DNA from: Macrostomum hystrix
Lineage: Eukaryota > Animalia > Platyhelminthes
Direction of reading: 5' to 3'
DNA length: 64,000 nt
NCBI GenBank assembly: GCA_950097015.1
Contig: CATNEN010000005.1
Coordinates: forward strand, 4,154,001 to 4,218,000
Below the pieces are notes generated by a model that saw only the letters and a program-made list of their open reading frames with translations, did no database searches and was not told the origin of the DNA. Shown in pieces: positions 27,088-56,400 of this stretch; within the stretch, counting starts at the first letter, position 1, and each line of letters begins with the position of its first letter. Made by a program: the position numbers and the translations under genes.

Positions 27088-27118
<31 letters not shown>

Positions 27119-34487: not shown

Positions 34488-36275
34488 TTATAATGCTTCA
34501 TCCGGATTCAAGGACACTCGCTTGGTCAGCCTGCTCTGCCTGTCCACAACTGAGTGATAGAAAACATGTTTCTTGCCCTCCTTTTTCCCGGGAATGGCCT
34601 GGCTAGTGATGCCCTCGTTAACGGCTAGAATCATGCCCTCGAGGTCTTCGTTCTCGTATCGACTCTCAATCACGTCGCAGAGAGTCTGGATGAAGATGGA
34701 GCCTCTGTCGGGACTCCTGTAGGCCGGCGAGTCCTCCGTGTTGGCGAAGCAGATGAGAAAGTCGCTCTCGTTTGGAATGAAGCTCGCGTCTTTCACTGGC
34801 ACGTCGCCATCGCGTTGAATGCACACCGACGATGCGCGCTCGGCCTCAAGGTGTGAGCGCACCGCCACCTGTTCGACACTGCCGCGACAGGCCTGCAAGA
34901 AGAACAGCTTCGGCTTTCGATCCAAGCCGTAGCACTTGCTTGGTTGAAACAGCATGGTCAGCTCTTTGATCATCTGGAACTGGCCGTCGCGACCATAGAT
35001 GGCGCCGTTGGTTCCGTGAGCCATGAGGAAGCAGACGAGAGTGCCGTATCTACTGTGGTTTAGCTGAGCGATCTTCGACAGCTCCCAAAAGATTTCTTTG
35101 CCCGTGAGATTTCGCCTGACCGTAACTTTGAAGCGCAAAGATTCGAAAAGCTTTTCAACTCGCATCACATCCAGCTCGGAGCCTGTGCGATTGGAAAACT
35201 GCGATTCCTTGTCGTAGATTTCGATATTGATAATTACACAATGACCCTGTGGGTCCCTCACAGGATAATAACGAATTGAAGTCCTGAAAAAAGAAAAGTT
35301 TTACAGAACAGATAAATGTTTTTTGAAAAGCTCTACTTTTCTTGCTCTAGGCTTACATCGTCTGTGACCTCATCAGCAGTTTTGTCGGTTCTCGTGTCAT
35401 TGGTGGTGGATTTAACCTGCAATTAATTGCAACCAACCGTTATGAGAAAGCAATGACGTTGACTACTGACTTACCTACGTCCTTACTTACTCGACGCTTG
35501 ATATCTGTCTGATGAAGCTCTTAGAACGAGGCACAGGTTCTGCTAGATCCTCTGCTCCTCCGATCTCCTCTTCCGAGAAGTCATCGTCGGAGTCGAGGCT
35601 AAAGGAAATAGAAAGAGTTAATGAAGACACAAATCGCAAAGCTCTAGAGCCAAAAATGAATCTATAATTTCATTCTTACTTGTCTGTCTTGAAGCCGCGC
35701 TTCGCGGTTGACCTACAATCGAGCAGAATAAACATATGCGAATCAAGTAACTCAGGAGACAAGTCCTTTGCAATCAACAATTTAGCGAATATAGCCAGCT
35801 GAAAAACGAATGTAATTCACCAGTTTCTCAGCAGTTGCACAATGTCCCAGTGTTCGTGCATCTCCGCCAAGGATTCGGCGGTGTCGCCGTCTATGTCTAG
35901 AGCGCCGGGGTCGCTGCCGAGTTGCAGCAGTTCGCTGGCAGCTTCCAGCTTTCCTTTCCAGCAAGCCAGCATCAGCGGTGTGCAGCCCAACTGTTTCTCT
36001 CTGGCCTCGAGATTCGCACTTGCGTTCGCTAATAGACGCAGTACAGCCAAATTGTTGGACTCGGCTGCCCAGTGCAGCGGAGTAAGTGCCTGCGGATCCC
36101 TGACGTTTTTGTCTGCGCCCAGGCTCAGCAGGAGTCGAACGCAGTCGGAGTGGCTCGATTTTGGTCCCGACTCGCCGCCCCAGGCAGCTCGCAACAGCGG
36201 AGTCTGGCCCCACTGGTCCCGACGGTTGACGTTCTGCCTGGTCGCTTGCTGGCGTAGTCGCTTCTCATCGCCCAT
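34488..36275 (-). CDS. Ankyrin-repeat-caspase fusion protein A (~483 aa; ~4 ANK repeats, acidic linker, caspase p20/p10)
   Basis: Exons 36275-35821, 35712-35680, 35598-35491, 35416-35357 and 35283-34488, all joined by phase-2 GT-AG introns; total 1452 nt, open. ANK motifs GQTPLLRAA, LTPLHWAA, GCTPLMLAC. Caspase motifs CVIIN, RTGS, MAHG, QACRG, SDFL, AYR..GSIFIQTLC. The start codon could lie further upstream. Confidence 0.9.
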
Positions 36276-36474
36276 TAGAGCCAGATTGCTCAGGGTGTTG
36301 GCCAGCTTTTGCAAGGTAGGCGGGGTGGGTGTCAAAATCTGAGCTTCTCTCAACCGAGATTCAATTTGAAACTTAAAGCGTCTCTAAACAAAAACAATTT
36401 ATCAGCAAAAAAAGTATAAATAAATTTTTAGGCACTCTCGGGAAAGTAAATTACAAAGTTAGGGAAACAACTCG

Positions 36475-36690
36475 CCAGGGCCGCCCTAGAGGACCAACCT
36501 CCAAGGCACAGTGAAGTGTACACAGCCTGACGATGAGAAAGTCAGGGCAGATGTACACACCTGTGTGAGGGGATGTCTGCGTGTCAGCGGAATGGGCAGA
36601 ATTGCCTCCTTCCTGGCTGCGGGTCTAGTGTCACCAAATGAGGTGCCATTGCCCGCAGCACTCCTACAATTATTATAATATTATTGCTTA
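36475..36690 (+). mobile_element. SINE family A, 5'-truncated copy
   Basis: Reverse complement of the 39520-39872 body; ends ...GCAGCACTCCTACAATTATTAT. Confidence 0.8.
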
Positions 36691-37574
36691 GCGCTCCTTA
36701 AGTAATTAGTTTATTAAGAAACAAAAAATGTTCTTTTGCATTGCGAAAAATACGCTTTTGCTGCGAATCATGCCCTCAATTTACAGTAGCGCTAAATTTC
36801 TCGGTATTTTTAGCCCTAACCTCTCACAATGCCTGAAGTCGTATTCTCTAACCCCCCTAGTCGTTTGTCATCGCGTCTTTCGCAATTTAGGCTCAGTGCG
36901 AGGACATTCAGCCACAAGCATTTGGACGAACCGCATGTTTTGTGCCACACAGTTCGCTGGCAATAATAAAAATAACAGGCAAAAGTTTCTGAGAATATGG
37001 TACTGATGCTTACCTTCACATGTTCATCTGTCTGATTTACTTTGCTACGGCTTGATGAAGCCATACAGTGCAAAGTATAAAGGGATAAATCTCCACAGGA
37101 AACTGAAACTGATAAAGAAGTACTGGCCAGCGAATTCGTTGTTTGAAATTTCGAAACTAGCTTACGTTGTTACAGTACACTTTAAATAACCATTTTTAGG
37201 AACACAAGACTTTACGATTCTAATTCAAACTTAGACTCAGTGTAGCTAGTGGCTTCGTCCAAGTTGAGAACAATGGCATTTGAGCGAAGCATCGTAAGAG
37301 AGAGAGAGAGCTCTTATGTCAAGAAATAAACATAAAATGCACAATTGAGAGACTGCACAATGTCAGTGGAATGAGGGCTTAGGAAAAAAGTACAAAGTCC
37401 TAACAAAACCAACACGGATGGTCGAGTTATTAAATTTTCTGGCAAAGCATCCTCGAGAGGTTTTAGAGAGTGATTTTTCGTTGCAGTAATAAGTCCTTAT
37501 TACTAAATTGATAAGCAGTACGGTAAAACACGCAGTTGTAAGGTACTGACAATGCCTTCCAGTACAGCTGAAAT

Positions 37575-37935
37575 ATAAAAAAATTGCAGGAGGGCTGCGG
37601 GCCATGCCAAATCATTTGGTGACAGTCTAACCGCAGCCAGTTAGGACGCAATTCTGCCCATTTCGCTAACTCCTGAGCACACACGCACACAGATACTGTA
37701 CTCAGACACACACTTACTCAGGTGAGTACATCTGCCCTGACCTTCTCATCGTCAGGCAGTGTGCACTTTCACTGTGCCTTGGAGGTTGGCCCTCAAAGGC
37801 GTAAATTGCTTGACAAGCCCCCAAGCCTTCTCTCTGCGACAGCGTCCCAAATGAATGTGGCCTCGCCACGGAATCGAGCTCAGGGACCTTGGTGCGAGAG
37901 GCAGAGGCGTTAGACCATCCTGTCACTCAACCACC
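37575..37935 (-). mobile_element. SINE family A, near full-length (tRNA head)
   Basis: Colinear with 39520-39872; B-box-like GCTCGATTCC; tail GCAGCCCTCCTGCAATTTTT. Confidence 0.85.
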
Positions 37936-38519
37936 TTTTTACCTCCATCGTTCACCCACTTTAAAAATATTCCAGGTATTTTTTTTACATCAATTATCCT
38001 TCTTTACGGAGTTGTTGAGACACACATTTTTTATAAACAAACGCAAATCAGCTCCTACAGTTATGTATGTATTTCACATCTGAAAGAAATACATAAAGTC
38101 TTAAATTACTAAAAAACGAAAAAATGACGCACAGCAAAGAAATAGTGCTTGATTGAAAAGTCGTACACAAAGTGTGGCAATAATTGTTTTTCGAACACAC
38201 GAGACTTTGATCTTATACGAGTACATACTCGAGAAAATAATATCATTCAAAGAATGTACGAGCTAATATACGGTTATAATAGAAATAATAATTCAACGAG
38301 GCAGTATTACAGTGATTGCATTGTATTTTTTCACAGACTGATTTACCATACGGTTTAATGGGGCTAAGTGGCATAGCGTTAATGCGTAAACAAAGTTCTT
38401 AAGCTCGAATACATGGTGAGGCCACACTCATTTACATAGCTAAAGTCAGGACAATTGTACATCCCCGTTGGTGTTTGAGTTGATTATAATAATAATTGAT
38501 CACATCTGCCCCAATTGGG

Positions 38520-38670
38520 TCAGATGTGCAGCCGACAGCACAGCCGCAGCTATTGCGCGGTGCATCTGAAGGCAGCGAACGGCTGTTCAGTCCATGGACT
38601 GGGGGGACGCCACACCAACCGTGATGCGTAATAGCCCGTAGCCCTCCTGCAATTTTTATTTTATTCTACC
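38520..38670 (+). mobile_element. Retroposon 3' fragment ending in the SINE-A-type tail
   Basis: Ends GTAGCCCTCCTGCAATTTTTATTTTATT, but the upstream body differs from SINE A. Confidence 0.45.
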
Positions 38671-38756
38671 GTATGGCTTAGATCAACCACCGTGACAGAG
38701 TTTTTCTAAACAAATAAAAAAGAATTGAATTTGCAAAACTAATACCGAAGCCTCCT

Positions 38757-41700
38757 TCAGGCGACCAGGTGCGGGTTGAAGGACACCTTCTTGGATAACC
38801 GGCCTGTCTTTTCCACCACAGCCTGGTAGAAGGCTCCATCGCCGCCCTGAATAGGTCTGCTTGTGACGCGACTGTTAACCTCGAGGATCATGTCCTCCAG
38901 GAACTCGGTCTGATATTGCTCCTCAATTACGTCGCACAAAGTTTGCACAAAAATCGAACCATTTTTGGGATCTCTGTAGGCCGGAGAATCCTCTGTGTTG
39001 GCGTAGCAGATCAGGAAGTCGCTCTCATTCGGACAGTTCTGCGGATTCCTAACTGGGACGTTTCCATCGTGCTGCACCTCTGTGGGTTCCGAAACGTGGC
39101 CGCTGGCACCGCGACAGGCCTGGGTGAAGAAGAGCTTCGGCTTGCGCGCCAGACCTTGGCACTTTGCTGGCTGAAACAGCGAGACCAGCTCCTTGAGCAG
39201 CTGGTATTGACCGTCGCGGCCATAGATAGCACCTTTGGTGCCGTGAGCCATTAGGAAACAGACAAAAGTGCCAAACTGGCTGTGCTCGGCGCGGGCAAAG
39301 TTCGTCATCTCCCAGAAGATCTCTTGGCCTGGTTAGGTAGAGAAAACTTAAAAACGGTTTCGAAATGTTTGAAATAACTGCTAACCCACCATTGCGGGCA
39401 GAAATTGGAGGTTTCCTCGGCCCTAGGCTCGGCATGGATTTTTGGTAGGCTTTTTACCATTACCCGCTGCTAGCCGGGGTGCGGGGCAGAGCCCGCGCTA
39501 GGTGTGTGTGTGTATTAAATAATAGTAATAAACATAATTGCAGGAGGGCTGCGGGCAATGGCACGTCATTTGGTGACACTAGACCCGCAGCCAGCGAGGA
39601 GGCCATTCTGCCCATTTCGCTGACTCCTGAGCACACAAGCACACAGATACTGTACTCAGGCACACACTCACTCAGGTGTGTACACCTGCCCTGACCTTCT
39701 CATTGTCAGGCAGTGTACACTTTCACTGTGTCTTGGAGGTTGGCCCTCAAGGGTGTAAATTGCATCCAAGCCTTCTTCTCCGCAGCTGCGCCCCAAATGA
39801 ATGTGACCTCGCCGTGGAATCGAGCCCAGGGACCTTGGTGCGAGAGGCAACCGCTCTGCCACTCAACCCCATATAATTTATTGAGAATACTGTTAATTAT
39901 TATCCGAGTATTAATAAATGTCTATGGTCTCGCCATAGAGGTTTATACAGAGAAATGCCAGTTGTCCTTGGCACCAAGGTCTTCGACAATAATCACTGAA
40001 TATATTGACGATGCCGACGTCGAACGGCTTTGAAAGTTAGTTCATCGTAACGGGCGGAAAATTTTGATTCAGATGATGGAATTTCACGAAAATCGGTTGT
40101 TCGGTTTGGCAGCTATCCTGAAGTATAGGCAACGGGTATTTGAAATACCCCCATGGACATTCCACACGCGGAAAATATTGGACTTTCTACTGTTAGAAAT
40201 TCTTGCTAACTATCCAACTTCGGTTAGCGTTACAGAAAATTACCTGTGAGATCCTGGAATGACCAAACTTTGAAGCCCAACGATTTGAACAACTGTTTCA
40301 CCCGCCGGGCATCTAATCTGGAGCCTTCTCGACGACTAAAGTTCGACTCTGGGTCGTAGTTCTCGATGTTTATTACTACACAATGTCCCTGTGGCTCGGT
40401 GACTGGGTACACATTGCGTAGGTGAGCTCTGCGGGTGACAGATAAGGTGTGCGATCAAGCATTCATGCAAATTCAATACTCACTCGTACTTACCCAGCGT
40501 CCGAGTGACTCAAAATTGGAGTCGGTGAGTGAGGCCCCATTCTACAACAGCAAATTAGAATGGTTAAAATACGGAGCTAACTACTAAACTGCTAGCAAAA
40601 TTCACCCTTACCCAATGAGATCCAAAGATCTGGTCTCATCAATCTGTTGAGGCTGGAACATTTCCATCTTCATCTGCTCCAAAAAGTGCACGCTGAAAAT
40701 AATGATCGGAGCAGTGGTCGCTCAAAAAAGCTGTCTGTTATTATGCAAAAAATATTACGAAGATTGTATAGTTTAGTCATTTACTCAGCATCCCCATCAG
40801 TTTCTGCTCCACCGGTGACTTTTGCCGATGCTACAGAGAAGTTCTTCGACCTGAAGATTTTCAGAGATAAGACAAGAAGTGAAAAACTCATTTCTCGTAT
40901 CACTTTGCTAGCATAGGCAATACAAAAGCGTTTGAGTTGTTGTTATCAGTACGAGCGAATGTATGGTTTTAGGTTGCACTCTACTAACCAGTTTTTTTCG
41001 AGTGTTGTATAGTTGGCTCTTAGCTCTGTGCTCTCTATCTCTACCTCACTCTCTTCCTCTGATTGGGTCCCACTTCCTTACCCTTCCTGTCTTCTAATTG
41101 GTTCCCACCCCATCACCCCTTCCTGGCTTCTAATTGGTTCCCAATCTTTTACACCTTCTCAATCTCAAATCTCAAATCAATTATTAAATGCCGTTTTTAT
41201 TTTTAGCGTGGCTAATTTACACTCGAGAACGACGACAGCATGTTCAGTCCGTTGACTGGGGAGAGCCACGGCAACAGCGCATACTCTTCACTTAATAAAC
41301 ACTGGTATTCGTTTTGTATCCACATCTGGGTTAAAGCAATGGGTGACTTCAGTATCTCCCCTAATTGGCCTAAAATTCCGAAGTGCTAGGAATGGGACAG
41401 CGAGGCTCACCAGTCAGACAGGAGTCGCACAATGTCACCGTGCTCGTACATTTCAGCGAGTGACGCCGCAGTGTCACCGTCTTTATCCCTGACGCTGGGA
41501 TCGCAGCCGAACTGCAGCAGCTCTCTGGCCGCTTTGAAGTTGCCTCGCCAGCTAGCCAGCATCAGAGGCGTCAGGCCTCGCTTGTCCGTCGCATTGAGGT
41601 GAGCTCCGGCCTCGGCCAGGAGCTTCAACACGGCCAGGTTGTCCGACTCAGCCGTCCAGTGCAGTGCCGACACACCGTCCGGGTCCTTAACATTGACATC

Positions 41701-41880
41701 GGCGCCAAGGCTCAACAGAAGTCTAGCACAATCGGCGTGTCCTTGATTGGGCACGAACTCGCCAGCCCAGGCGGCTCGCAGCAGCGGAGTCTGGCCCCAT
41801 TGGTCGCGCCAGTTGGCGTTCTGTCGGTTGGCCAGCTCTCGCAGCCGTCCGATGTCGCCCATCAAGGCCAGATTGCTCAT
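38757..41880 (-). CDS. Ankyrin-repeat-caspase fusion protein B (~446 aa)
   Basis: Exons 41880-41411, 40850-40785, 40541-40494, 40428-40244 and 39328-38757; phases 2,2,2,1; total 1341 nt, open. In-frame stop upstream of ATG 41880. MAHG and QACRG intact. Confidence 0.9.
39520..39872 (-). mobile_element. SINE family A, full-length, inside the caspase-domain intron of gene B
   Basis: tRNA-like head GGGGTTGAGTGGCAGAGCGG...GGCTCGATTCC; shared body; AT-rich tail. Confidence 0.87.
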
Positions 41881-41939
41881 TGAGTTGGCTCTCTGGGGTT
41901 GCGGTTGTTAATTTGGATGGGCAAACTTGGCACCTTGGA

Positions 41940-42140
41940 CTAGGCTGGACGCCACACCCACTCCCTCACACTCACACCCACACCCACCCATTTAACAGCT
42001 GAACAGCTGGGTGAACTGCAGCAATGCAGAGTTAAATGTCTTGCTAAAGGTCTTTTCCTGTAGAGTCGAGAATCGAACCTCCGACATTTCTGAGTCGTGA
42101 GTCGAGAGGAATCCGACGCCCTAACCACTAGGCTACTACC
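41940..42140 (-). mobile_element. SINE family C (tRNA head plus central domain)
   Basis: A box TAGCCTAGTGG, B box GGTTCGATTC, then CTTTAGCAAGACATTTAACTC...TTCACCCAGCTG...AAATGGG, which resembles conserved SINE core domains. Confidence 0.7.
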
Positions 42141-42214
42141 CCTACTAGATTAGACCCCACTGGGGCTACAATGAGACCTGATGCTGGTCCATCCACTGGG
42201 GTACTGAGACCCCA

Positions 42215-42915
42215 CTAGGCCACAACCCCAACTGGGCCACAACCCCCACTGGGCCACAACCCCCACTGGGCCACAACCCCCACTAGGCCACAACCCCCAC
42301 TAGGCCACAACCCCCACTAGGCCACAACCCCCACTAGGCCACAACCCCCACTGGGCCACAACCCCCACTGGGCCACAACCCCCACTGGGCCACAACCCCA
42401 ACTGGGCCACAACCCCAACTGGGCCACAACCCCCACTGGGCCACAACCCCCACTGGGCCACAACCCCCACTGGGCCACAACCCCCACTAGGCCACAACCC
42501 CCACTGGGCCACAACCCCCACTGGGCCACAACCCCCACTAGGCCACAACCCCCACTAGGCCACAACCCCCACTAGGCCACAACCCCCACTAGGCCACAAC
42601 CCCCACTAGGCCACAACCCCCACTGGGCCACAACCCCAACTGGGCCACAACCCCCACTGGGCCACAACCCCCACTGGGCCACAACCCCCACTGGGCCACA
42701 ACCCCAACTGGGCCACAACCCCAACTGGGCCACAACCCCCACTGGGCCACAACCCCCACTGGGCCACAACCCCCACTAGGCCACAACCCCCACTGGGCCA
42801 CAACCCCAACTGGGCCACAACCCCCACTGGGCCACAACCCCCACTGGGCCACAACCCCCACTGGGCCACAACCCCAACTGGGCCACAACCCCCACTGGGC
42901 CACAACCCCCACTAG
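42215..42915. repeat. 17-bp minisatellite (CCACAACCCCCACTRGG)n; G-rich on the minus strand
   Basis: Period 17. Confidence 0.96.
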
Positions 42916-44232
42916 GCTACAAGCCCCACAAGACTGCAGCCCTTACTAGATGACGAGCCCTACTAGGCTACAACCCTTAATTTGTTGCAATCCAACATGT
43001 GTGAATGTGTGTTATTGTACAGTATCACTGTCCTGGCGTGCATAGGGGTCAGCGGAATAGACAGAATTGTCACCTCTCTGACTGCTTCTCGACCGTCGCC
43101 AAATTACACTTCATTGCATTTTACTGTTCTATGATAAAATTTACCATTTCAATTATTATCCATAACAGTTCTAAAAATAACACACAAAGTAGAATTCAAA
43201 ATTCAAAATTCAACAGATTCCAAAACTTAAAATGTTTACCTCTTCCTGATCCTTTTTCATGCCCCATTCGTTGGTCATTATGAACAGTGAAGTCAAGTTT
43301 CGGTTATTCAAAATTCAAAATGTGCTGAAAAATTTTGTGCCTTAGGGAAAAGAAAAAATTGAAGCTGCGAAAATTACTAAACACAAGAAATTGGAGTGAA
43401 CATATTAAAGTTTGAGCTGAATGTAGTTTAAGCAACTTATTAAGCTGAGACAAGAACTGTAGCTATAGAAAGAGCAGAAATGAGCTGATGCAGTACTCAC
43501 GCGGAGAGGTTGAGAATCTAACACAATAGGAGTGCGTCGATAGGAGTGTACAGTTTATTTAGTGTACACAGGAGATTTCAGTACAATGGCTTCCTCACCT
43601 GTCTCTACACTCTATACACCAACCAGTATTTTAGGCGAAAATGACGACAAGACAGGAAAGTGGTTACCAATGCCAACAACAATCTTCTAGACAGCTCTGG
43701 ATTGAACGAAATAAGTAATCTGTACTTTTGTGTGATTTGTCTGCAGGCATACCCAATTCATGTACTAAATCTAGTACAAGTATAAAGCGTCATTTCTTGA
43801 TTTGAGCGAATATAAGTGACAATCAACTAATAAATACAAACCTTTGGCTCATTTGACCTAAGCACACAAACTCATTTGAGTAATTTTATATTATATTTTA
43901 GTAATTACTCATTAACTTTCAAAAGCGATAGTTTTCATGTATTTGCGATGCGCAGGAAAATCGTTTGAAAAAATCTTTGAAATACGCAAATATGCTAGAT
44001 TTGTAATCGCAGGTGCAGTTGTACGAGGATAATTATTCTGGAAAATAATAGTTTCTTAGTTAATTAGTAAATAGCGATGGTACTACAGCACTTTACGCTC
44101 GTAAAAGCATGAAACACAGAAGATGGGACTAAAAATAGGTGGTGTTTCGCTTGAGTAAACAATTCTATGCTTCGCGCAATAATAGTTAGGAAAAAATTTC
44201 CATTAATGCATCAGCGCTTAAATTATTCACCT

Positions 44233-45969
44233 TTACTTTCCCCAGCCACGGCCTCCTCTGAAACCTCCTCTGAAACCTCCTCTGAAACCTCCTCGGCGAC
44301 CTCCTCTGAAACCTCCTCGGCGACCTCCTCTGAAACCTCCTCGGCGACCTCCTCTGAAACCTCCTCGGCGACCTCCTCGGCGACCTCCTCTGCGACCTCC
44401 TCGGCGACCTCCTCGGCGACCTCCTCGGCGACCTCCTCTGCGACCTCCTCGGCGACCTCCTCGGCGACCTCCTCTGCGACCTCCTCGGCGACCTCCTCGG
44501 CGACCTCCTCGGCGACCTCCTCTGCGACCTCCTCTGTGACCTCCTCTGCGACCTCCTCTGCGACCTCCTCTGCGACCTCCTCTGCGACCACCTCTGCGAC
44601 CTCCTCTGCGACCTCCTCGGCGACCTCCTCCGCGACCTCCTCGGCGACCTCCTCCGCGACCTCCTCTGCGACCTCCTGTGCGACCTCCTTTGCGACCACC
44701 TCCGCGACCTCCTGTGCGACCTCCCGTGCGACCTCCCGTGCGACCTCCTTTGCGACCTCCTTTGCGACCTCCTCCGCGACCTCCTGTGCGACCTCCTTTG
44801 CGACCTCCCGTGCGACCTCCCGTGCGACCTCCTTTGCGACCTCCTTTGCGACCTCCTCCGCGACCTCCTGTGCGACCTCCTTTGCGACCTCCTTTCTGAC
44901 CTCCTTTGCGACCTCCTTTATGACCTCCTTTGCGACCTCCTTTGCGACCTCCTCCGCGACCTCCTGTGCGACCTCCTTTGCGACCTCCCGTGCGACCTCC
45001 CGTGCGACCTCCTTTGCGACCTCCTCCGCGACCTCCTGTGCGACCTCCTTTGCGACCTCCTTTCTGACCTCCTTTCTGACCTCCTTTTCGACCTCCCGTG
45101 CGACCTCCTTTGCGACCTCCTTTCTGACCTCCTTTGCGACCTCCTTTATGACCTCCTTTGCGACCTCCTTTCTGACCTCCTTTGCGACCTCCTTTATGAC
45201 CTCCTTTACGATCTCCTTTCTGACCTCCTTTGCGACCTCCTTTGCCACCCGGTCCTGGGTAGTTCTGACTTCTGCCATCGCCAGAGCCGTCGAACGGAAA
45301 ATCTAGTTCATTGCCTCCGAATCCTTCAGGAGAAAAGTCGGGAGCTTCTTCAGGTGGATCCATCTCCGGCTCCTCTGGAGCATAGCTCATGATTTCGGAT
45401 TCAGTTTCCTGATTTCCAGCGGCTGCCTGCTGCGAATTGTCCGGGGTTTCCTGCTGTGCCGCATTGGAACTCTCCTGCTCAGGTAAGATCGCGGCTTGTT
45501 GCTGAGGAGTGTCACAACCATTCTCCTCAGCTTGCGTATTGTCAGCCGGTTGCCCAGACTGCGACGGGTCTTGACTTGAAGATGACGACTCGGCGAAACT
45601 ACGAGTAAATCTGCGCAACCATAACAAGAAGGCCCTTTTCATCCATGCCATATATAATTGTCTAGACGATGACCAACGATTTCTCCTTTGCGGCATTCGA
45701 AAAACTCTTCTATAGTTTCTTGTTGCGAGCCGAGGCAATACTGGAGTAGGCAACCTCGTTCCATCAGACGTCACAGCTGGTGGCTCCGCAGTCGAACTTG
45801 GAGTATCATCGCTGGCTCGACGATCCGCGAGTGCTTCAGCTTGGTCGATAGCCACCAAGTCAGGCAGCTGCGCTCTAAAACGCGGCAGTGCAGTGACTGG
45901 CTGGATAAAGATGCCGCATTGTAGAACTGCCAAGGCTACGAATATTAATCCGAGGAAATTTGTTCCCAT
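44233..45969 (-). CDS. Secreted precursor 1 (578 aa): signal peptide, Trp/Arg-rich segment, acidic spacer, ~330-aa Gly-Gly-Arg/Lys repeat tail
   Basis: ATG then hydrophobic MGTNFLGLIFVALAVLQCGIFIQPVTA; unique N-terminal half in frame with 12-nt repeats (GGRK/GGRT/GGRG/GGRR/GGFR); TATA box 77 nt upstream. Confidence 0.85.
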   Translation of the reverse strand: MGTNFLGLIFVALAVLQCGIFIQPVTALPRFRAQLPDLVAIDQAEALADRRASDDTPSSTAEPPAVTSDGTRLPTPVLPRLATRNYRRVFRMPQRRNRWSSSRQLYMAWMKRAFLLWLRRFTRSFAESSSSSQDPSQSGQPADNTQAEENGCDTPQQQAAILPEQESSNAAQQETPDNSQQAAAGNQETESEIMSYAPEEPEMDPPEEAPDFSPEGFGGNELDFPFDGSGDGRSQNYPGPGGKGGRKGGQKGDRKGGHKGGRKGGQKGGRKGGHKGGRKGGQKGGRKGGRTGGRKGGQKGGQKGGRKGGRTGGRGGGRKGGRTGGRTGGRKGGRTGGRGGGRKGGRKGGHKGGRKGGQKGGRKGGRTGGRGGGRKGGRKGGRTGGRTGGRKGGRTGGRGGGRKGGRKGGRTGGRTGGRTGGRGGGRKGGRTGGRRGGRGGGRRGGRGGGRRGGRRGGRRGGRRGGRRGGRRGGRRGGHRGGRRGGRRGGRRGGRRGGRRGGRRGGRRGGRRGGRRGGRRGGRRGGRRGGRRGGRRGGFRGGRRGGFRGGRRGGFRGGRRGGFRGGFRGGFRGGRGWGK

Positions 45970-46045
45970 TTTTAATCCAAAGGCGCGTTAAATCCAGGAA
46001 TTTCCAGGACATGTGCAGTTTTCATTTGTGTGCAATTTTAGAGCA

Positions 46046-46052
46046 TTATATA
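46046..46052 (-). promoter_or_regulatory. TATA box (TATATAA) of secreted precursor 1
   Basis: 77 nt upstream of ATG 45969. Confidence 0.5.
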
Positions 46053-47139
46053 CACTGGGCTTTTTAATTAGTGTCACTGAGTCCTATTGTGTCTCCGTCA
46101 AGCCAGAGTTTTCTAACGCTAAATCCGTGAAATTTTGCACAACTTCATTGTTCTGTGACAGCTTTTTATACTGTTGAAGGACGTTGTACTCTCACGATTA
46201 CAAGCAGAGGCTTTTATTAATAAGCTGTGTATATTATTATGCATATCCTGGCTTTTTAGGTGGAAAGATTAGTCGTAAAACGAAGCAGTCAACAGAAATA
46301 CCGGATTTATCGATCGGCTGAGCCTGCAATATGCACGCGTACGAGCTACAAGCATGGTTTAAAAAGTAAAATGAAATAAAGACAGCGTGTACTCGTAGTT
46401 TCAGACAGGGGATATCGATGCTTAGATTGTAGACATCTTATCGCTCGCAATAGCAGGTTCTTCAAAAGAACAATTCGAAAAGTTGTCCAAATTAAACATA
46501 ATAGTGTACAAATTCTCGAGTGAGAGAACTTGCGGACCGTTTGAACCGTCCAAGTTATTCCCACTAATGAAAACGCGCAGGCTGCGAGGTCGCATCTTTG
46601 AAAGCCGAGACAATCTGGAACCGGAGCTTCAGCGACTTCTACTGTTTCAAAATCTCATGTCAGAGCTATAATAAAGGCTATCGGAATGGAATTATTGAAA
46701 AATGAATGAGGAATTCAATCATTACGGTAGTAAAAAACAAAAGCATGTAGCTAAGGAAGCGAAAGTTGGTTGCACCGCCGCTGTTTCTCGAGCCTATGTC
46801 ATCTGAGCTAAGCAATTTGTCAGTATCCATATTTTCTTAAAACAATAGGACCTTGTCGAATGCACTAATTAATTTAAAAAATTAAATTTGTTGAAAATTT
46901 CAGCTGTAAAACTTCCTCGAATATTATTGGATCTATCCCAGCTGAAGTTAAAAATATAATGGATTTCATTCTCTACCTTTGCCTGGCACTTTGGGCAGAT
47001 TCTGAGGTCATCTCATCTCAGCTACTCTAGGTCTGACTGTTCTCTGTCTCGCAGACAAACTTTTCGTTACAGAACAGGTCTTGTACAGGCAGAATTGGCA
47101 GAACAGCTTCATATACAGTCCAGAAACTGGTTAAGTGTG

Positions 47140-47340
47140 CGGACTTCATCTGGACGATGCATGACGTTGGGCGTAGCGTGAATGCTTTTGCTCATCTCTT
47201 GATGGCACTGCCGAAACTGTGGCAACGTCAAGACGTGGATCAGAACGGACGCCTTGGAGGCAGCTTGACGCTGCTTATGCGGCCTGCTGCATGCGGCGTT
47301 TGGAGTTCCAGGGACCGGCGAGATATCCCGATGGGCAATT
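47140..47340 (+). pseudogene. Decayed non-LTR retrotransposon RT C-terminal fragment
   Basis: Frameshifted reading resembling AET(W)...QLDAAYA(A)LLHAAFGV, like the post-RT region of RTE-type elements. Confidence 0.35.
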
Positions 47341-47391
47341 GACTGATGGAAGCATGGAGTGTGACGTTTTGACTTTTGATGTCGATGGCCC

Positions 47392-47830
47392 TTCACTTAC
47401 TTAATTGCAGGGGGCCTGGGGCACTTGACGCACAAACACAGGAGCGGCATGCCCCCAGGCCGGCAAACCAGGGGAGGACTTAGATGCCTGAAGGTTAGGG
47501 ACGAGAGGACCAAGCCACGCGCGCAGACGGCTGGTGAAACCTCGCCGCTCAGAGCACGCATGGCTGGTGCACACCCGCCCCACCACCATACAACGCCTCA
47601 CACCCGGCCCAACGCACAAACACAAACTCAAACAAGCAGGCATGCAGAAGGCAGGGGTTAAGCTATTTTTTAATTAGCTTTGGTTGCACAGAATTAGGTG
47701 CATCTCCGCAAGTCACTACTTCGCAGACCCCCAACTAAGCCCCGAAATAATCGTGACTTGAAGGGAGGAACGAACCAGCGACCATTGGAAAGTGAGGCAG
47801 CGACACTAGCCGCTGACCCACTCACCCCCC
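47392..47830 (-). mobile_element. SINE family B, full-length, with 14-bp target-site duplication
   Basis: Direct repeat GATGTCGATGGCCC at 47378-47391 and 47831-47844; tRNA-like head TGGGTCAGCGG ... GGTTCGTTCC; 3' end GGCCCCCTGCAATTAAGTAAGT. Confidence 0.85.
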
Positions 47831-48719
47831 GATGTCGATGGCCCAGAAGGCAGAAGCGCGCTAGCTGACTTTTAACTATTTTTCCCCAGTGTGGTTGGCA
47901 TGAGTAGTACAGTAGTGTTGCTGCTGTTGTCAACTTTGGAGACCTACTCGATCCGGGTTGCCTTCACTTATGGTGACCAGATGTGCACCGATGAAGCGGC
48001 TGAAGCGAGCACCGACGAGAGCGTGACAGTCAATTTAGTTCTCGAGTTTATCCTCTGTGCCAGACTCGGAGTCACGTGAGGGCGCAGTTGGCACCAAACA
48101 ACTAGCTACTGTCTTAACAGTAGAAAGACACGCTAATTTCCCCCAGGGAAAGAAATACTACAGGAGTATTTCCAATACCCACTGCACACTCCATGATAGC
48201 TCGCAAACCAAAGGACCGATTTTTGTGAAAGTCCGCTAAATAAATCAACATTTTCCCCCTTAATTACGATTAATTAATTTTCCAAGCGTCCTACGTCAGC
48301 ATACTAGCACACTATAAGCCCCCTTGTGGGGCACTACTGTTCAGACAAAAAATCTTGTGTAATGCAGAAGGACAAAACACACCTGAAAGTAAACTGATGT
48401 CTCAGAATGTATTCAAGCTCAGACTAACTATTTTTGCATTTAGTGAGAAATAAAATTCTCGTTGAATCGCAATCACTAATATTCGCAATCAGGGAAATTA
48501 ATACTGACGAAATGAGTTTTCGTTTTTGTTTACTTTCAGGTGAAAATTAGCAAATTAGCCCCTCTTCGGGGGCGCACAAAAGTTATCCTAATGCTTGTTG
48601 ACAGTTTGCATATTTTTATGTGGTCCAACAATTGAATTGTGGCAATGAAAGGCTAAAATTAGTTCTACATTAGGCTTATATTGGTATATATTTATACGCT
48701 TACACAGATGTACGAGATG

Positions 48720-48890
48720 TATGCCTGCGTTCAGTATCTGTGTGCGTGTGTGCTCAGGAGTCAGCGAAATGGGCAGAATCACCTCAACGCTGGCTGCGGG
48801 TCTAGTGTCACCAAATGATGTGCCTTGGCTCGCAGCCCTCCTGCATTTTTATTACTATTATTATTATTACTATTAATTTTATTATTATTA
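48720..48890 (+). mobile_element. SINE family A, 3' fragment
   Basis: Matches the SINE-A 3' half and tail GCAGCCCTCCTGCATTTTT followed by (ATT)n. Confidence 0.8.
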
Positions 48891-49522
48891 CTCAGAGTAC
48901 ACCTAGCCGTAAACCACCAGCGTTGGTCATGCCATCAAAACGTGCAGGTACTGACCAGTCGAGATAGATCCGATAAAGTATCCTGAGATAACTTTTCATT
49001 CTTGAGGTTTGGTCGATCTGTCATGGTTGGTCTGACAGTGTACGCACCCTCACGGTGTCAATTGGACCTCATATGGGCTTAAATTGCACGCCTCTAAGCT
49101 ACTGAAATCCTATTAAACAGCGCTTACATATTTGGTGTTATATCAAAAGTTTATGGTGATTTATATATATTTAAAAATTGTGTTCTGAAAAAATCTGATG
49201 TGTTTTCTAATACGCTAATTCTAATTCTAATGAACACATTCGTTATTAGCTAATTACAGTTTCACCGTTTACTGAGCAGTTCATACGGAATTTCGAGAAG
49301 CGAATAGTGAAACTGTTTGAATCGGAACAGTTTGCAGAGCAGTATAAGCAGCCAGGAATATGTATAGTGAAGTTTCTGAAAATTTAAACACTTAAAATCT
49401 TAAACTAAATTTCAATTTTTTTTCAGTAATTGTAAAGTAGCGGTTTAGTTCGCGCTATCTGAAAACGAGACACACTCGAAGGCATTCACGAGCCTCGTAA
49501 ATTAGATACTTCTTCAATTTCC

Positions 49523-50893
49523 TCATCCGAAGCGGAAACCAAAACCGCCGCCTCGATGAAAAAAATGTGGCCGGTAGAAAAATCTTGGCGGTGGACGATA
49601 GAATGTCACTGGCCGCGGACGATAGAATGTCACTGGCCGCGGACGATAGAATGTCACTGGCCGCGGACGATGGAATGTCACTGGCCGCGGACGATGGAAT
49701 GTCACTGGCCGCGGACGATGGAATGTCACTGGCCGCGGACGATGGAATGTCACTGGCCGCGGACGATGGAATGTCACTGGCCGCGGACGATAGAATGTCG
49801 GACGATAAAATCTGACTGGCTGCGGTCTGCGGATTATAACTGGAGTTGTTCTAGGCCATCTTGGTCGAGGAATTCTCGGCAGACTTGGTCGAGGAATTCT
49901 TGGCAGACTTGGTCGAGGAATTCTCGGCAGTCTTGGTCGAGGAATTTTTGGCAGTCTTGGTCGAGGAATTCTTGGCAGTCTTGGTCGAGGAATTCTTGGC
50001 AGTCTTGGTCGAGGAATTCTTGGCAGTCTTGGTCGAGGAATTTTTGGCAGTCTTGGTCGAGGAATTCTCGGCAGTCTTGGTCGAGAAATTCTCGGCAGTC
50101 TTGGTCGAGGTAGTCTCGGCCGCCTTGGTCGCAAATGTTTCGGGAGTTTTGATCTAGGTCTTCGTCGGTTAGCGGCCCCGAAGGGTGAGGAGCTCCCTAG
50201 AATTTGTTCAAGGGGGCTGATTCCGAAATCGTCTTGCGGACGATCGTCAGATTGTCCTTGAGTGTCATCGTCTGCATTAGATTCGGGCTCTTGGTCTGGC
50301 TGCTGGTTTGGACGATCTGTACTTTCTTCATTTAATGCGCTAGAGTTCTTTGGAAGTTCAACCTCCGAGTTTTGAACCAATGGGCTAGCGGTTGTGACGC
50401 CTTGTTCTGATTCACGTGCGGCATCTTCTTGAGAATCACTGGAAGTTTCTTGGGTTCCAGTGTCACTGGTGCCAGCATCCTGTTGGTCATTACCGACAGG
50501 CTCTTCAGAGTCGTAGGTTCCTCCTTCAGATCGCCTGCGGTTCCTTCTCACCCATCTGGGCCAACGGAAGCGTCTAGACCAAGGCCAGCGCGTCCTTCTC
50601 CACCGTTGCCAAGCGAGCCCGATGGTAGTTCGACTGGGCCTATCAGTTGGGGCCTCTCCGTCTTCGTTTGCAGACTGCAACCTGTCCACTGCTACGTCGC
50701 TCTGCGCGGCAGTTGTCGAATCACCTAGAACAATTCGGTCGCTATCTCCGGCATTGCGAGCCTCCAGTTGGTCGCTGAAGTCTAAATCGGTCAAGGCTTC
50801 AGATGCTGCAGGTATGGCAAAGACGGGCCGGGCCAAGATGCAGCTTAGAAGGGCACCGAAAATCAGGTAGCAAGTAAAGCTACCTGTTCGCAT
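49523..50893 (-). CDS. Secreted precursor 2 (456 aa): signal peptide, Trp/Arg-rich segment, acidic spacer, Pro/Arg-rich (RLPRIPRP)n and (RPRPVTFH/Y)n repeats, Gly/Phe/Arg tail
   Basis: ATG 50893 gives MRTGSFTCYLIFGALLSCILARPVFA; TATAAAA at 51002-50996; single exon; ends FFHRGGGFGFRFG*. Confidence 0.85.
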   Translation of the reverse strand: MRTGSFTCYLIFGALLSCILARPVFAIPAASEALTDLDFSDQLEARNAGDSDRIVLGDSTTAAQSDVAVDRLQSANEDGEAPTDRPSRTTIGLAWQRWRRTRWPWSRRFRWPRWVRRNRRRSEGGTYDSEEPVGNDQQDAGTSDTGTQETSSDSQEDAARESEQGVTTASPLVQNSEVELPKNSSALNEESTDRPNQQPDQEPESNADDDTQGQSDDRPQDDFGISPLEQILGSSSPFGAANRRRPRSKLPKHLRPRRPRLPRPRLPRISRPRLPRIPRPRLPKIPRPRLPRIPRPRLPRIPRPRLPRIPRPRLPKIPRPRLPRIPRPSLPRIPRPSLPRIPRPRWPRTTPVIIRRPQPVRFYRPTFYRPRPVTFHRPRPVTFHRPRPVTFHRPRPVTFHRPRPVTFHRPRPVTFYRPRPVTFYRPRPVTFYRPPPRFFYRPHFFHRGGGFGFRFG

Positions 50894-50995
50894 ATTTGTG
50901 ACGAATTTCAAGAGCGAATGATTTCGAACTCTAGAAGAAAGCAAACTTTCCGTCTGCCAATTCGGCTTGCTTCGGTAGCTGTGCTTTGCACGCAT

Positions 50996-51002
50996 TTTTA
51001 TA
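50996..51002 (-). promoter_or_regulatory. TATA box (TATAAAA) of secreted precursor 2
   Basis: About 100 nt upstream of ATG 50893; overlaps the upstream in-frame ATG, which argues against that start. Confidence 0.55.
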
Positions 51003-51609
51003 GACTTTGGCTTTGCCGCGCTTGTCGAGGTAAATCCAGGAGTTTTACGAGAGTTAAAAAAACTTCCAGAAGGCAATTATTTTTAGCATATATCCGTCCT
51101 CTAAGGCTATATCAAAATGCCTAGCTATTCCCGCCACTGAAACCATAAGTCTATAGCATCAATTCCTTTGTCACTTGTCGTGGGCTAGCATTAACGTTTA
51201 TCTGTACAATTTCAGACAGTGCCATTGTTCACAAGCTAATAAATTGCAAGAGAAGGACCACATGCCCTTGTTAGCCTGCATTGCAATAACAAAGTTTAGT
51301 AGCATCAATTAAATTGTATTTTCTGTCTCGACAGACCCCAAGGTGCAAAATGACAGAAAATCCAGGTTTTGTTTGTACTACTCTGTACTGTATGAGAATT
51401 GCCCTATTATACCGCGATGCGTCTTGCATTAGGTCAACATCAAAGTCAAATGAGTAAGTTTTTTACTTTAAATCTAGGCGTTTTTCACCCAAAAATTGCG
51501 CCTGCTAAGAAATATTTCTTATAAAGAAAGGGCCTTTTGACGCTCAAGCCGTTGAGTGTCGACATGTAGATATTTGTTAATACGCAAAGGAGAGAACAAA
51601 AGAGACAGC

Positions 51610-52080
51610 GGCTCAGCAGCATCTGACGCTCAGGGACGGTACACCGTCAAGAGCCATCAGAGCTCTAGACGGCAGCCTCTCGGCGTAGTGCACGCTTAGT
51701 GCGTAGCGCAGCAGGGACCGGTAGAGCGTGTCGGTCATCGGCACTGCTTCGGGACAGGAGGATCAGTTTCACGGCATCAACACCGTCGACCAGCAGTTGG
51801 ATCGCGGCACAGAAGCGCGTATAGGCATCGTATAGTGTAGTCTCGAAGACATCGGCGCACACGTAGTCCACAACCACAATAAGGAAGCCAGCGTGTCTCC
51901 TTGAAGGACGCCGGAGCTGATGCTAACTCTTCGGTGGAACGGAATGGAGACGATATTAAAGGTGCGCCTTTGAGGGGCCGCACAGGCAGTCGCATCGCCT
52001 CCAAGACTTCAGTGCCTGTGGAGCAGACTGGTACCGATAGCAGGGGCCAACTCAGGCAGATTGAGAACCCTTTGTGGCAG
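51610..52080 (-). pseudogene. Decayed non-LTR (RTE-like) reverse transcriptase fragment
   Basis: Frameshifted RT motif GVLQGDTLA ... VVDYV, and downstream LYRSLLRYALSVHYAERL. Confidence 0.7.
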
Positions 52081-53498
52081 TGAGCACATTGTGATAGTAG
52101 TAATCGACTAGCAGGGAAGATTCTTGAGAAGAATACTGTTCATTTTAGAAGGCCGAGTCTAATATTTCAAATACTACTTTTTATGATTCATTATAGAATA
52201 TATTAAGTGCCAGTCAGTCAGCTGAACGGACGAAAATTAATACCATCTCGTAGGGAGCAACAAACAATTGCAATCTTTAGTTGTGCATAAAATTTTAGGG
52301 GCATGTGGGTCCTGATGCATGCACCGTTTTGTGAGCCAGAAATTTTGCCAATTCATACACAATTTCACCTTTGTGCTCTGTACACCTGCCCTATAAACTC
52401 ACACCTTATAAGAGTAAATTAAATGACACACGGGCGGATTATGCTGATGCAGCTTTTTTGCAGGATTGTGATGCTGAAACAAAAAACTAACAATGAAAAC
52501 AGAGATATGCAATCAAGAGATCAGGATTAAGGAATCAACAAATGGGTAATAAAAATGATTACCTAGACAATTTGAAAATCTGAAATAACTAGGAAAGCTG
52601 AAACATTTTTCAATTTATATTTTACTGAAAAGGCGCATGCAAACGTTTAAATCGTAAAAATGATTATAACTTCCGAATCGAAATAAGTTTTCATGCACTA
52701 GATTCCTGAAAGCATTTAAATAATAAGTTTTTGTTTATGAACGATCATCAGCAAAAAATACACGAAAAAAACAGAACAAATTCACATGTAGACGCTAACG
52801 TACAGCTGATACAGAAACGCAGTGCGCAATTAACTGTTTATTGAGAATAAAATACGAACCCGGCAGTTTATTGTGAGTTAACCTATTCTTAATCACTATT
52901 GGCATTCTAAAAAATACGTTCAAGTAAAAACGTGTCTGGAAAAAAATAGAAAAAGTACCAGAGTATGATAAAGAACAAGAGATTCTACTGCAAATACTAG
53001 TGAGCACGAAATTTGAAAATTTAAGACAAGAAAAGAAGCGAAGGCATTTATTTCTTTTTGTGGTATATTTTTCGTTGAGTTTAAAAAATGTTTCTGATTA
53101 AGACGAACCTACGGCTTAGAGATGTCAGAAAAATATGATTACGAGATGTTGAGTTGAAGTGTAACTAAGTTTCTGAAACGAACAAGCTTCTATAAATTTA
53201 GTCATCTTTCTTAGGATTGCCAACTTGAGTAGTAACGATGAGTAACGATGCGATGTTTCTACTGCTGTACTCAGCAACAGCTCAGAATATACTATTATTG
53301 AGTGTGAAAATGACAAAAAACGGTATAATTATTAGAAAATCATGGTTTATTAAATAAAAGAGTGCCTGATGTAGAAAATAAACGTCAGAGAAAAAAAGAA
53401 ATTCGATGGCGAACTTTTTTTAATCTGCTTTTATTAGTAACGCTGTTAGTTGCTTAGCTAGACTGGCGCACCATTTTCTCTTGTCTAAGAATTCTATC

Positions 53499-56400
53499 TC
53501 AGACACTCTGGTAGCCCTGACCAGCGGCTGATCTGCGCCGGCTGATGAGATAGGCCAGCAGGACAATCACAACCAGGCCAGCTAGTGAAGCGCCAACCAC
53601 AATTGGTACAATGTTATCAACGTGGCCGTGTTTCTGGTCGCATTTCGTCTCACTGCCAGTAAACAAGCTTGTGGAATTATCAACTCGAAAGGCCTGCAGA
53701 CGCAAGTCCGAAGCCGTCAGGACGATGACGAGCTTTTCAGATGTGCCTGGCACAACCGGACCGTCCAGTTTCGCGGACACACTCTGACAAGAGTAATAAC
53801 CCTTGCTAGGAATGTCTGCAACGACGCTGTTGTCATTAACAGCGAACAACTGTTTACCGACGTTTGATGCACCAGGAAATACAGTCGAATCATTCAGATT
53901 GTAGCTTAGTAGAACACCAGTGAGGCCGTACGGTCCGTCGGCTGTGCTGCGGTTTAGTTTAAAGGTGAGTTTCCAGTTTTTGAAAAATGTCACAGTCAGA
54001 TTCTGGCGCGTAGCGTATGACTTGTCATTCTTGCTTCGTCGCTCGTCACCACAAAAGCCGCTAACACTAAAGACCTCAGGCACGTAAATTTTTGACTGGC
54101 TAACTCGACCAGGTCGCATGTAGGGAATGTCGAGCTGTAGACGCGACTGGATGCGTAGGCAAGGCTGATGAGTCACTGTGCTCAAAACTGTTAGATTGAG
54201 GAGATTCGGCTGACTTGGTGGCGCACTGAAATGTAGAGAATATAGTCCTATAGGAATCTTATATCAATATTAATTACTCGACCTTCTTGTGCGCTGACTT
54301 GGACAATCAATCTAACGCGTTTGCCTCTAACACAAGGATGCCTAAGAGATCCATTAGCGAGGCAACTATAAATTTAGGATATTAGTCTTCAGATATGAGT
54401 ACTAAATGAGTCAACTGGCACAGGAAGTTAATTTAATTTTAATTTAATTAGAGGATCACAACTCATGAATTGAAGCGTTAAGGGACTTTATAAAAAGTTT
54501 AACGGGAGTTACTACACCAACTTTAACCGCATCTCGAAACACTGATTAAGTTATTGTTCGCATTCGCACTGCCATCAAACATCCACATGTTCCTCCCTAG
54601 GTCTTTCTAGATTTTTCTGCAGTTAGCTGTCTCGCTGCTAGCTGTAACGTACATTGCGCGTACGTACGCATACACTTGTCTGCCCTAGTACCGTTAGTAT
54701 TTTCGCTTCAATTTAGTATTTACTAAGCTTAGAGACAATTATTATTGTACAATTCTACAAGGTTTCTCCAGTTCCAGTATACTCACAAACTGGTTAAAAC
54801 TGGACTGAAATACGTTACACAGATTAAGACTCAATCTAGATTACAAAAACTAAATCTAGCAATAATTGCGAACGCTTAAGCGCCTATCAAAATTGTGACA
54901 AATTGGCAATGTTGTTTAAGTAAAATTGTCAGCCTAAATGCATGAATCAGTCATATACACAGAGATAAACGGAGCAACTATTGCTAATTGATGCGTTCAG
55001 TGCTAGCCAGTTCAAAACACACAAAACACGAAACATTTGCAGAATTTATTAATACATTTAACAAAACCCAATATCCTTATGAATAGGACCAGAAAATACC
55101 AAGCTATCTAGATCTTCTAGATCTACACTTAATGACAAACTGTTTTGACAGTCAACGCAATACCCAAGTCAGCCCGAGATATGGAAAGCTAGTTCAGCTA
55201 CCTACACGGTGTGATTCCCTCTCTAGGGCTGCGTACATCGCTTGCACAGTTTGGCTGTGTGCCCCTCTTACCCAACCATGTATATTATCATACAGTAGCA
55301 AACCTTTAACAAGTTGCTAGCAAATCTGCTTACTAAAAAATCTTTCTGGCTTTGAATTTGTAATATGCCGAAGTTTGCCAAGAATGCTGCGCATTTCCGG
55401 CAAATAATTTATCTCTAGACTGATTCGCAAACTACCCGACTCTCAGACCATCGGATAGAATAAATTTGCATCCTTGGCGAGCGAATACAAAATTCTATAA
55501 TTGGTAAGCTTCGGATAACACACACTTTGATTAGAGTTTGTAGATCGAAAATTTATGGTCATGAAGAGCAAGTTAATTATATTTATTGAAAAATTGTGGC
55601 TTGAAATACACATCTCACCTTGTTGTGACAGGCGTGATTGTGGTTGTCGTTTGATCCTGAGGACAATGTGCCACTTTATCGCTCAGCGTTCCATTAGTTA
55701 AGTTGAAAGCCTGTTTATGAAAGAATAGTTAAACTTCAAAAAACTACCAAAATTAACTAGATACACACTACAATTATCTACATTAACACAAAGCAATATT
55801 ATGTAGTTACCTGAATGACCAAGCCTTTGCGCAATGTCATCTTGGCATAGGGGAAGAGTGTTCGGTTTCTAGCAGCTAATGGCAAGTCAATAGGTGATTG
55901 ACACTCAAATCGTTCAATGTTGCTAGATAGTGACAAGTTGAGTTTTTCAATAGCAAAAGTGACTTGACCAGTGTAAAGCGGATTTTTAAACTGTGTACTA
56001 TTGACAATGTTTACAGTGAGACTCATGTTGGACATAACCACTTGACCAGTTGGTAGGCTGACAAAACGAATTCCAACAATGGATCTAGTAACATTTATCC
56101 AAATCTCTGACCAAACACGATTAGGGACTTTGGCAGCACAGGTTCCTTTGATGCTGGTTGAACTTGGCTTTCCAAGTGTCCATGTGGTGGTCACCTGAGA
56201 CAAATATTTATCGATTGGTTTTAATGAATTTAAATTAGTAAAATGAATGTAGAGGCAACCATTTCGTGCTTAAATATAAGTTATATATGTGCTTTATTAT
56301 TAAGTAATTTTAATCATATAACAGTAGAGCTAGTCACACTTACATTTTTGTTTGATGTGTTGAGAAATTTAATTTGCACACTCAGTGTTGTGTTCAACAC

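Follow-up and report, generated by a model that had tools for sequence, protein, structure and literature searches.

Two neighbouring intronless reading frames, each ending in a long run of cationic repeats, raise the question of whether a satellite-rich flatworm genome encodes here a pair of genuine secreted proteins and, if so, what such proteins might do. The frames, designated gene A and gene B, lie on the minus strand with 3.5 kb between them in a 64,000-nucleotide (nt) stretch of Macrostomum hystrix contig CATNEN010000005.1 (the window, whose positions are used throughout; Table 1) and correspond to contig coordinates G000:C5:4198233-4199969 and G000:C5:4203523-4204893, respectively. An earlier note on this DNA had described them as secreted precursors sharing a TATA box, a signal peptide, a Trp/Arg-rich segment, an acidic spacer and a polycationic repeat tail, and had proposed an antimicrobial or adhesive role. 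All of these elements were seen in both intronless open reading frames (ORFs), at the positions and on the strand described, with the Trp/Arg segments at amino acids (aa) 98-121 of A and 94-117 of B. As set out below, the predicted proteins resemble sticky or condensing secretions of gland cells more than they do classic antimicrobial-peptide precursors.

A and B share an unusual block design

The defining feature of both proteins is a common order of blocks, in which a predicted signal peptide is followed by a linker (aa 28-80 in A; up to aa 85 in B), a basic Trp/Arg patch, an acidic block of ~115 aa and a polycationic tail. The four blocks after the signal peptide measure 53, 43, 114 and 341 aa in A versus 58, 36, 119 and 216 aa in B, with net charges of -2, +13, -24 and +130 versus -10, +14, -25 and +66. 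The signal peptides are heuristic calls based on a hydrophobic core and small residues at positions -3 and -1. The mature proteins are nearly without cysteine, contain no globular domains and yielded no confident AlphaFold2 structure besides the signal-peptide helix and aa 101-128 of A (predicted local distance difference test, pLDDT, ~78-86). This lone confidently predicted helix of mature A extends from the Trp/Arg patch just into the acidic block. The models were computed from single sequences without an alignment and are weak evidence, yet they agree with the composition.

The tails differ in their repeats. Gly, Arg and Lys make up 177, 100 and 31 of the 341 tail residues of A (52%, 29% and 9%), and the 12-nt unit GGT CGC NNN GGA passes through successive zones encoding GGRK/GGQK/GGHK, GGRT/GGRG, GGRR and GGFR before the protein ends in GWGK. 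The tail of B holds 62 Arg and 60 Pro among 216 residues (29% and 28%) and comprises two arrays with 24-nt units, one reading RPRLPRIP (11.4 copies by Tandem Repeats Finder) and the other RPRPVTFH/Y (8.9 copies), with a Gly/Phe/Arg end that closes in GGGFGFRFG.

Table 1. Features of the A-B locus and its surroundings in window positions (pI, isoelectric point; arrows mark predicted cleavage).
Feature	Position	Strand	Description and basis
Ankyrin-caspase gene pair	34488-41880		Lower-coordinate side of A; Pfam
Gene A	44233-45969	minus	Single ORF, 578 aa + TAA stop, pI 12.0
A polycationic tail, aa 238-578	44236-45258	minus	84 in-frame 12-nt units, net +130
A acidic S/E/Q/D-rich block, aa 124-237	45259-45600	minus	Net -24; predicted disordered
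A basic Trp/Arg patch, aa 81-123	45601-45729	minus	Net +13; segment map and structure model
A signal peptide, aa 1-27	45889-45969	minus	Predicted cleavage VTA↓LP
Shared 11-mer TCCTGGATTTA, A copy	45989-45999	minus	20-30 nt 5' of A ATG
TATATAA box of A	46045-46051	minus	~76-82 nt 5' of A ATG; direct reading
Gene B	49523-50893	minus	Single ORF, 456 aa + TGA stop, pI 11.8
B polycationic Pro/Arg tail, aa 241-456	49526-50173	minus	Net +66
B acidic S/D/E/Q-rich block, aa 122-240	50174-50530	minus	Net -25; segment map
B basic Trp/Arg/Pro patch, aa 86-121	50531-50638	minus	Net +14; segment map
B signal peptide, aa 1-26	50816-50893	minus	Predicted cleavage VFA↓IP
TATAAAA box of B	50997-51003	minus	~104-110 nt 5' of B ATG
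Shared 11-mer TCCTGGATTTA, B copy	51031-51041	minus	5' of B
Second TATA-like element of B, TATATGCTAAAAATAA	51077-51092	minus	51 nt 5' of shared 11-mer; direct reading
LAMP-like ORF	53499-54185	minus	Higher-coordinate side of B; Pfam Lamp2_2nd, E 7.7e-13
ERI1-like exonuclease ORF, 354 aa	60578-61642	minus	Pfam RNase_T/DEDDh, E 1.1e-24

The tails recall the polycations of flatworm adhesive glands

The reading that we favour, tentatively and without holding it to be probable outright, is that A and B are gland-secretion polycations that would act by electrostatic binding and condensing of polyanions. We infer that both genes are transcribed and would yield secreted, cysteine-poor, intrinsically disordered block proteins, the tails of which may have arisen by recent in-frame expansion of minisatellites (12-nt units in A, 24-nt units in B) of the class that fills this genome. 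The polycation would be packed in the secretory granules of gland cells; upon release it would bind and condense polyanions such as the glycocalyx, mucus and sulfated sugars, in the role of a cohesive or matrix component. The Gly/Arg/Lys (GRK)-rich low-complexity regions of flatworm temporary adhesives have been proposed to work in this manner.

This proposal is modelled on the adhesive proteins of other flatworms. Secreted low-complexity GRK and Lys/Arg (KR) polycations with a pI above 13 are essential products of adhesive glands and bind negatively charged sugars; in the KR regions of Mlig-ap1 from Macrostomum lignano the pI exceeds 14, and heparin prevents adhesion whereas added cations prevent release (PMC6410801). 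In Minona ileanae, Mile-ap3 is a stand-alone GRK protein that makes up the dense core of adhesive vesicles, beside the Pro-rich Mile-ap4 (PMC6745481), and Tmed-ap3 of Theama mediterranea combines a signal peptide with a GRKHS repeat in a protein of 3,700 aa with a pI of 13.2 (PMC9229212). Cohesion in a temporary adhesive is the sole experimentally grounded role for secreted Gly/Arg/Lys polycations in flatworms. Gene A resembles ap3 and the KR regions of Mlig-ap1 in joining a signal peptide to a long, low-complexity polycation of tandem Gly/Arg/Lys(/His) repeats whose pI is very high, and it resembles ap3 in being a stand-alone GRK protein, unlike the GRK regions of Macrostomum, which have been reported as flanks of ap1 and not as a separate gene. 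Gene B carries the charge expected of a GRK adhesive (+66) but is Pro/Arg-rich and not GRK; its position beside A parallels that of Mile-ap4 as the Pro-rich secreted partner of a GRK polycation, a likeness drawn by description only (PMC6745481). The adhesive alternative, which the earlier note had raised through Mlig-ap1, accordingly fits the literature better than the antimicrobial one, and it remains an analogy. A search of the literature on rhabdites found nothing useful.

Several observations weigh against the gland-secretion reading. With 341 and 216 aa, the tails are about tenfold shorter than the ~3,600-3,700 aa of ap3 and the KR regions, the 210-aa head of A with its Trp/Arg patch and acidic block has no counterpart described for ap3, and the likeness of A to ap1 and ap3 is one of composition and design, not of demonstrated homology. 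A vWD-domain search did not locate an ap1 orthologue in the published M. hystrix assembly (PMC10468722; 220,453,370 bases in 42 contigs), which served for all searches of the worm's own genome, and an exhaustive phmmer search of 1.84 billion representatives with the A head returned zero matches and no transcript-derived fragment. Three further points bear on the genes themselves: the codon score of the heads is ~0 against 0.17-0.36 in neighbouring domain-encoding genes, neither stop is followed within 600 nt by an AATAAA or ATTAAA poly(A) signal, and non-coding 12-nt satellites that read G/R/K/E, with open frames of 300-1,100 codons, are common in the genome.

The reading would matter in two respects. 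Flatworm temporary adhesion is among the few reversible underwater glues known at the protein level, its working part being a secreted Gly/Arg/Lys polycation, and a compact single-exon polycation of ~60 kDa with an acidic block of its own, neighboured by a Pro/Arg sister, would lend itself to expression and testing far better than adhesion proteins of 3,700-5,400 aa. A and B could also show a route by which such proteins originate, in which a secreted head captures an in-frame minisatellite and expands it.

The non-repeat heads argue for real genes

The marginal codon score, the missing canonical poly(A) signal, the failure of protein searches to return a homologue or a transcript-derived fragment and the genome-wide 12-nt satellites are equally what would be seen if A and B were not functional, that is, if they were untranscribed or decaying frames with C-terminal satellites and an architecture left as the by-product of one local duplication. 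Tandem repeats occupy ~32% of the window, amounting to ~20.7 kb of the 64 kb in no fewer than 24 arrays whose periods range from 5 to 43 nt. Three of the six reading frames of the A array are open, and the B arrays are likewise open in other frames. Because non-coding satellites abound and the A array is open in several frames, the repeat halves of A and B prove nothing alone, and because satellites generate mechanical ORFs, any long ORF in this genome needs a non-repeat part in order to be believed.

Such parts are present in both genes. The non-repeat heads run for 240 and 254 stop-free codons, whereas the longest such run among 300 shuffled versions of the surrounding 7.1 kb has 199, and in both the ORF frame has the highest codon-usage score of the six and lies above every intergenic control. 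A predicted signal peptide stands at the front of each head, beginning at the first ATG of the frame or close to it, and a TATA box lies on the 5' side. The two heads have diverged almost beyond recognition and both are still open, where unconstrained sequence would be expected to gain stops. There are no indels in the three arrays (one in A, two in B), and the tails are cationic all along, including the non-repeat stretches of B, with 1 and 0 acidic residues; the maintenance of cationic charge therefore points to selection for charge and not to a satellite read by accident. Synonymous variation is uninformative on selection here, the repeat units of A and B being too homogeneous. On this evidence we judge it quite probable that A and B are real protein-coding genes, and consider a non-functional origin unlikely. 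Were they nevertheless not transcribed, the pair would stand as a caution on satellite-extended ORFs in a repeat-rich genome.

Traces of a probable tandem duplication

The earlier note had taken A and B for paralogues that kept a scaffold and swapped their repeats. The sequences lend this claim weak support. A BLASTP comparison of the whole proteins was not significant and a genome search with the A head did not retrieve B, while residues 1-55 of the two proteins are 39% identical and share the pattern PV-x-A↓[LI]P ... L-x-D-L ... D-Q-x-E-A, the rest of the sequence being without clear similarity. In the stretch beyond the hydrophobic core, the A-B score exceeds that of 4996 of 5000 shuffles. 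Weak collinear matches were also detected at the DNA level, at the signal-peptide cleavage region (-45/-42 relative to the ATGs of A and B) and at the Trp/Arg patch (-282/-294), and the summed diagonal score was attained by 7 of 300 global and 20 of 300 within-segment codon shuffles. Upstream, the 11-mer TCCTGGATTTA occurs twice in the 64 kb (0.04 occurrences expected), both times on the minus strand and just 5' of A and B, where it lies on the 3' side of a TATA-like element at a spacing of 52 nt (A) and 51 nt (B). Taking these sequence traces together with the adjacency, the common orientation and the identical block design, we regard it as likely, if weakly shown, that A and B arose by tandem duplication, after which they diverged fast and expanded their tails separately.

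Second near-copies accompany the 11-mer on the minus strand in both genes, namely the half-copy TCCTGGAAAT before the A copy (45989-46009) and TTCTGGAAGT in B (51031-51069), and the 11-mer and its near-copies could represent a shared cis-element. A STAT-type reading of the TCCTGGA motif was considered and dropped as over-interpretation.

The start of A is straightforward: the first ATG lies at 45969, since the open frame spans 584 aa. The start contexts are AAAATGG in A and AATATGC in B, with adenine at -3 in both. The open frame of B extends upstream as far as 51076 and contains another in-frame ATG (50994-50996), which precedes the signal-peptide ATG by 34 codons and overlaps the TATAAAA box, a correction to the earlier note; the choice between the two (50893 versus 50996) is set by the transcription start. 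If the second TATA-like element were in use, B would have two possible promoters. The context of the upstream ATG of B, TAAAAATGCGTGCAAA, is similar to the A start, TAAAAATGGGAACAAA. Between the two B ATGs there is a possible splice-acceptor-like tract, tttgctttcttctag, and trans-splicing could therefore define the 5' end of B.

Sequence searches return no relatives

Word-indexed protein searches with aa 1-245 of A, aa 1-250 of B or the B head alone gave no match, nor did the ESM Atlas with either protein. Within the M. hystrix genome each head is single-copy and there is no further paralogue beyond A and B: a profile built on the 59 N-terminal residues that they share recovered A and B only, and a signal-peptide ORF scan of 41900-53500 revealed no third copy. 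One weak own-genome match to a head (locus L002) was set aside as an unrelated low-complexity ORF. The tails, when used as queries against the same genome, gave hundreds of matches, and each of the ten inspected proved to be a non-coding satellite with several open frames. We accordingly favour the reading that A and B are lineage-restricted, fast-evolving genes of Macrostomum hystrix, as their sequences suggest.

Two apparent family assignments were rejected. Pfam returned nothing for A and a Cornifin match (PF02389) for aa 251-353 of B at 51.2 bits against a cut-off of 34.8. This match is confined to the RPRLPRIP array and, because both are Pro-rich octapeptide arrays, is a periodicity artefact. 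SPRR proteins are cytosolic precursors of the vertebrate cornified envelope whose ends are rich in Gln and Lys and which lack a signal peptide, whereas B has one. A second candidate was an RNA-binding protein of the RGG/GAR type. The GGRR/GGFR units of A match nucleolar proteins such as fibrillarin/Nop1 and GAR1 weakly and compositionally (E 0.014-0.41), and A has a signal peptide but neither a methyltransferase nor an RRM nor any other globular domain. Homology to intracellular RGG proteins, the outcome that the earlier note had named as fatal to a secreted role, was looked for and not found, the matches of the Protein Data Bank (PDB) sequence search being compositional only, of RGG type, and Pfam adding no such domain.

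The uninterrupted 6,881-codon frame at G000:C2:1973589-1994231 (minus strand; loci L038-L040), which has a C-terminal vWD domain and no intron over 20.6 kb, was considered as ap1 and rejected; its composition and length fit a large lipid-transfer (vitellogenin/apolipophorin-like) protein.

The antimicrobial-precursor model meets the tails with difficulty

The block layout, with a signal peptide followed by anionic and cationic blocks, is also what would be expected of host-defence precursors in which acidic parts mask cationic parts in storage until proteolysis frees antimicrobial peptides. The peptides freed could be of Trp/Arg type (indolicidin/tritrpticin-like) and/or Gly/Arg- and Pro/Arg-rich (Bac7/PR-39-like), with microbial membranes or ribosomes as targets. 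Bac7, Bac5 and PR-39 are Pro/Arg-rich antimicrobial peptides and indolicidin and tritrpticin are Trp/Arg peptides, and both classes derive from precursors with anionic regions, as are found in A and B. The RPRLPRIP and RPRPVTFH units of B are similar in composition to Bac7-type Pro/Arg repeats, and RWPWSRRFRWPRWVRR of B is similar to the Trp/Arg/Pro peptides. Possible processing sites are present around the patches: that of B is bounded by RPSR↓ and, at its end, by the furin-type site RNRRR↓S, and that of A holds the predicted helix (pLDDT 78-86) together with RR/KR sites. The patch charges (+13 and +14) are roughly offset by their acidic neighbours. In the tail of B, Pro directly follows 34 of the 66 basic residues, so that this tail would be resistant to convertase cleavage and could remain whole.

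It is at the tails that the model encounters its main obstacles. The junction between acidic block and tail has no usable cleavage site in either protein: that of A, DGRSQNYPGPGGKGG, is without a dibasic site, and in that of B, ANRRRPRSK, Pro comes directly after the RRR. The acidic residues could mask the tails to a limited extent, since there are just 0.19 (A) and 0.44 (B) of them per basic tail residue. At 341 and 216 aa, the tails far exceed the known Pro/Arg- or Gly-rich antimicrobial peptides, of which, to our knowledge, none is longer than 60 aa. Convertases acting on the 46 dibasic pairs in the tail of A (26 RR and 20 RK) would leave tetrapeptides. Pfam detected no cathelin or other known pro-domain in A or B, and no homologues were found for the heads. 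In comparison with cathelicidin-type precursors, B lacks both the cathelin domain and a cleavable junction, and its tail has 216 aa against 13-60 aa. The classic antimicrobial-precursor design ascribed to the pair is thus not borne out by the junctions, charge ratios and tail lengths, and we consider a host-defence role improbable. The C-terminal G or GK, previously offered as a potential amidation signal, carries little weight and was rejected as evidence, since such an ending is unsurprising in Gly-rich tails. Should the host-defence model be true, A and B would constitute the first flatworm effector family of Pro/Arg and Trp/Arg type.

Reproductive secretions and external effectors

The features that single out A and B as orphan, predicted secreted and fast-diverging tandem duplicates are shared by reproductive secretions, and the pair might encode prostate (seminal-fluid) or female-gland products evolving fast under sexual selection, with Arg-rich tails that might help tissue passage or sperm handling in a hypodermically inseminating species. 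Among the prostate-limited transcripts of M. lignano, 31 of 76 are without a BLAST match, and signal peptides are present in 38 of the 65 for which an ORF was identified (PMC5977470). Reproduction-related genes of the genus are reported to evolve fast. Against this stand the lack of any sequence feature of A or B specific to reproductive tissue and the content of PMC5977470 itself, which mentions no seminal-fluid protein with such polycationic repeats (the word "repeat" occurs 0 times). We consider this origin distinctly unlikely, more so than a host-defence role.

Poly-(Gly-Arg)- and poly-(Pro-Arg)-type repeats elsewhere enter cells and poison ribosomes and condensates. A more speculative proposal, to which we assign very little likelihood, is that A and B are founding members of a family of secreted Arg-rich effectors specific to Macrostomum, with poly-(Gly-Arg)-like and poly-(Pro-Arg)-like tails, that is deployed outside the body. 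Such effectors could be weapons against microbes, prey or predators, or could aid tissue penetration with the ejaculate in hypodermic insemination; the acidic block would act as an internal safeguard and the Trp/Arg patch as a membrane-active module.

Genomic neighbourhood

The domain-encoding neighbours of the pair are listed in Table 1. The ORF resembling a lysosome-associated membrane protein (LAMP) encodes a transmembrane segment and a cytoplasmic tail ending in GYQSV, and is probably the last exon of a LAMP gene. The minisatellite arrays noted at 1-33959 and 42210-42929 show a strong GC skew. Many of them have a period divisible by three and more than one open frame, which creates mechanical ORFs that reach 926 aa (13173-15953). 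A 393-aa Gln/Ala-rich ORF without a Pfam match (26416-27597, minus strand) enters at its C-terminal end the 21-nt satellite at 25891-26657, which reads as SLRPMVA repeats, and may thus be a further coding head joined to a satellite.

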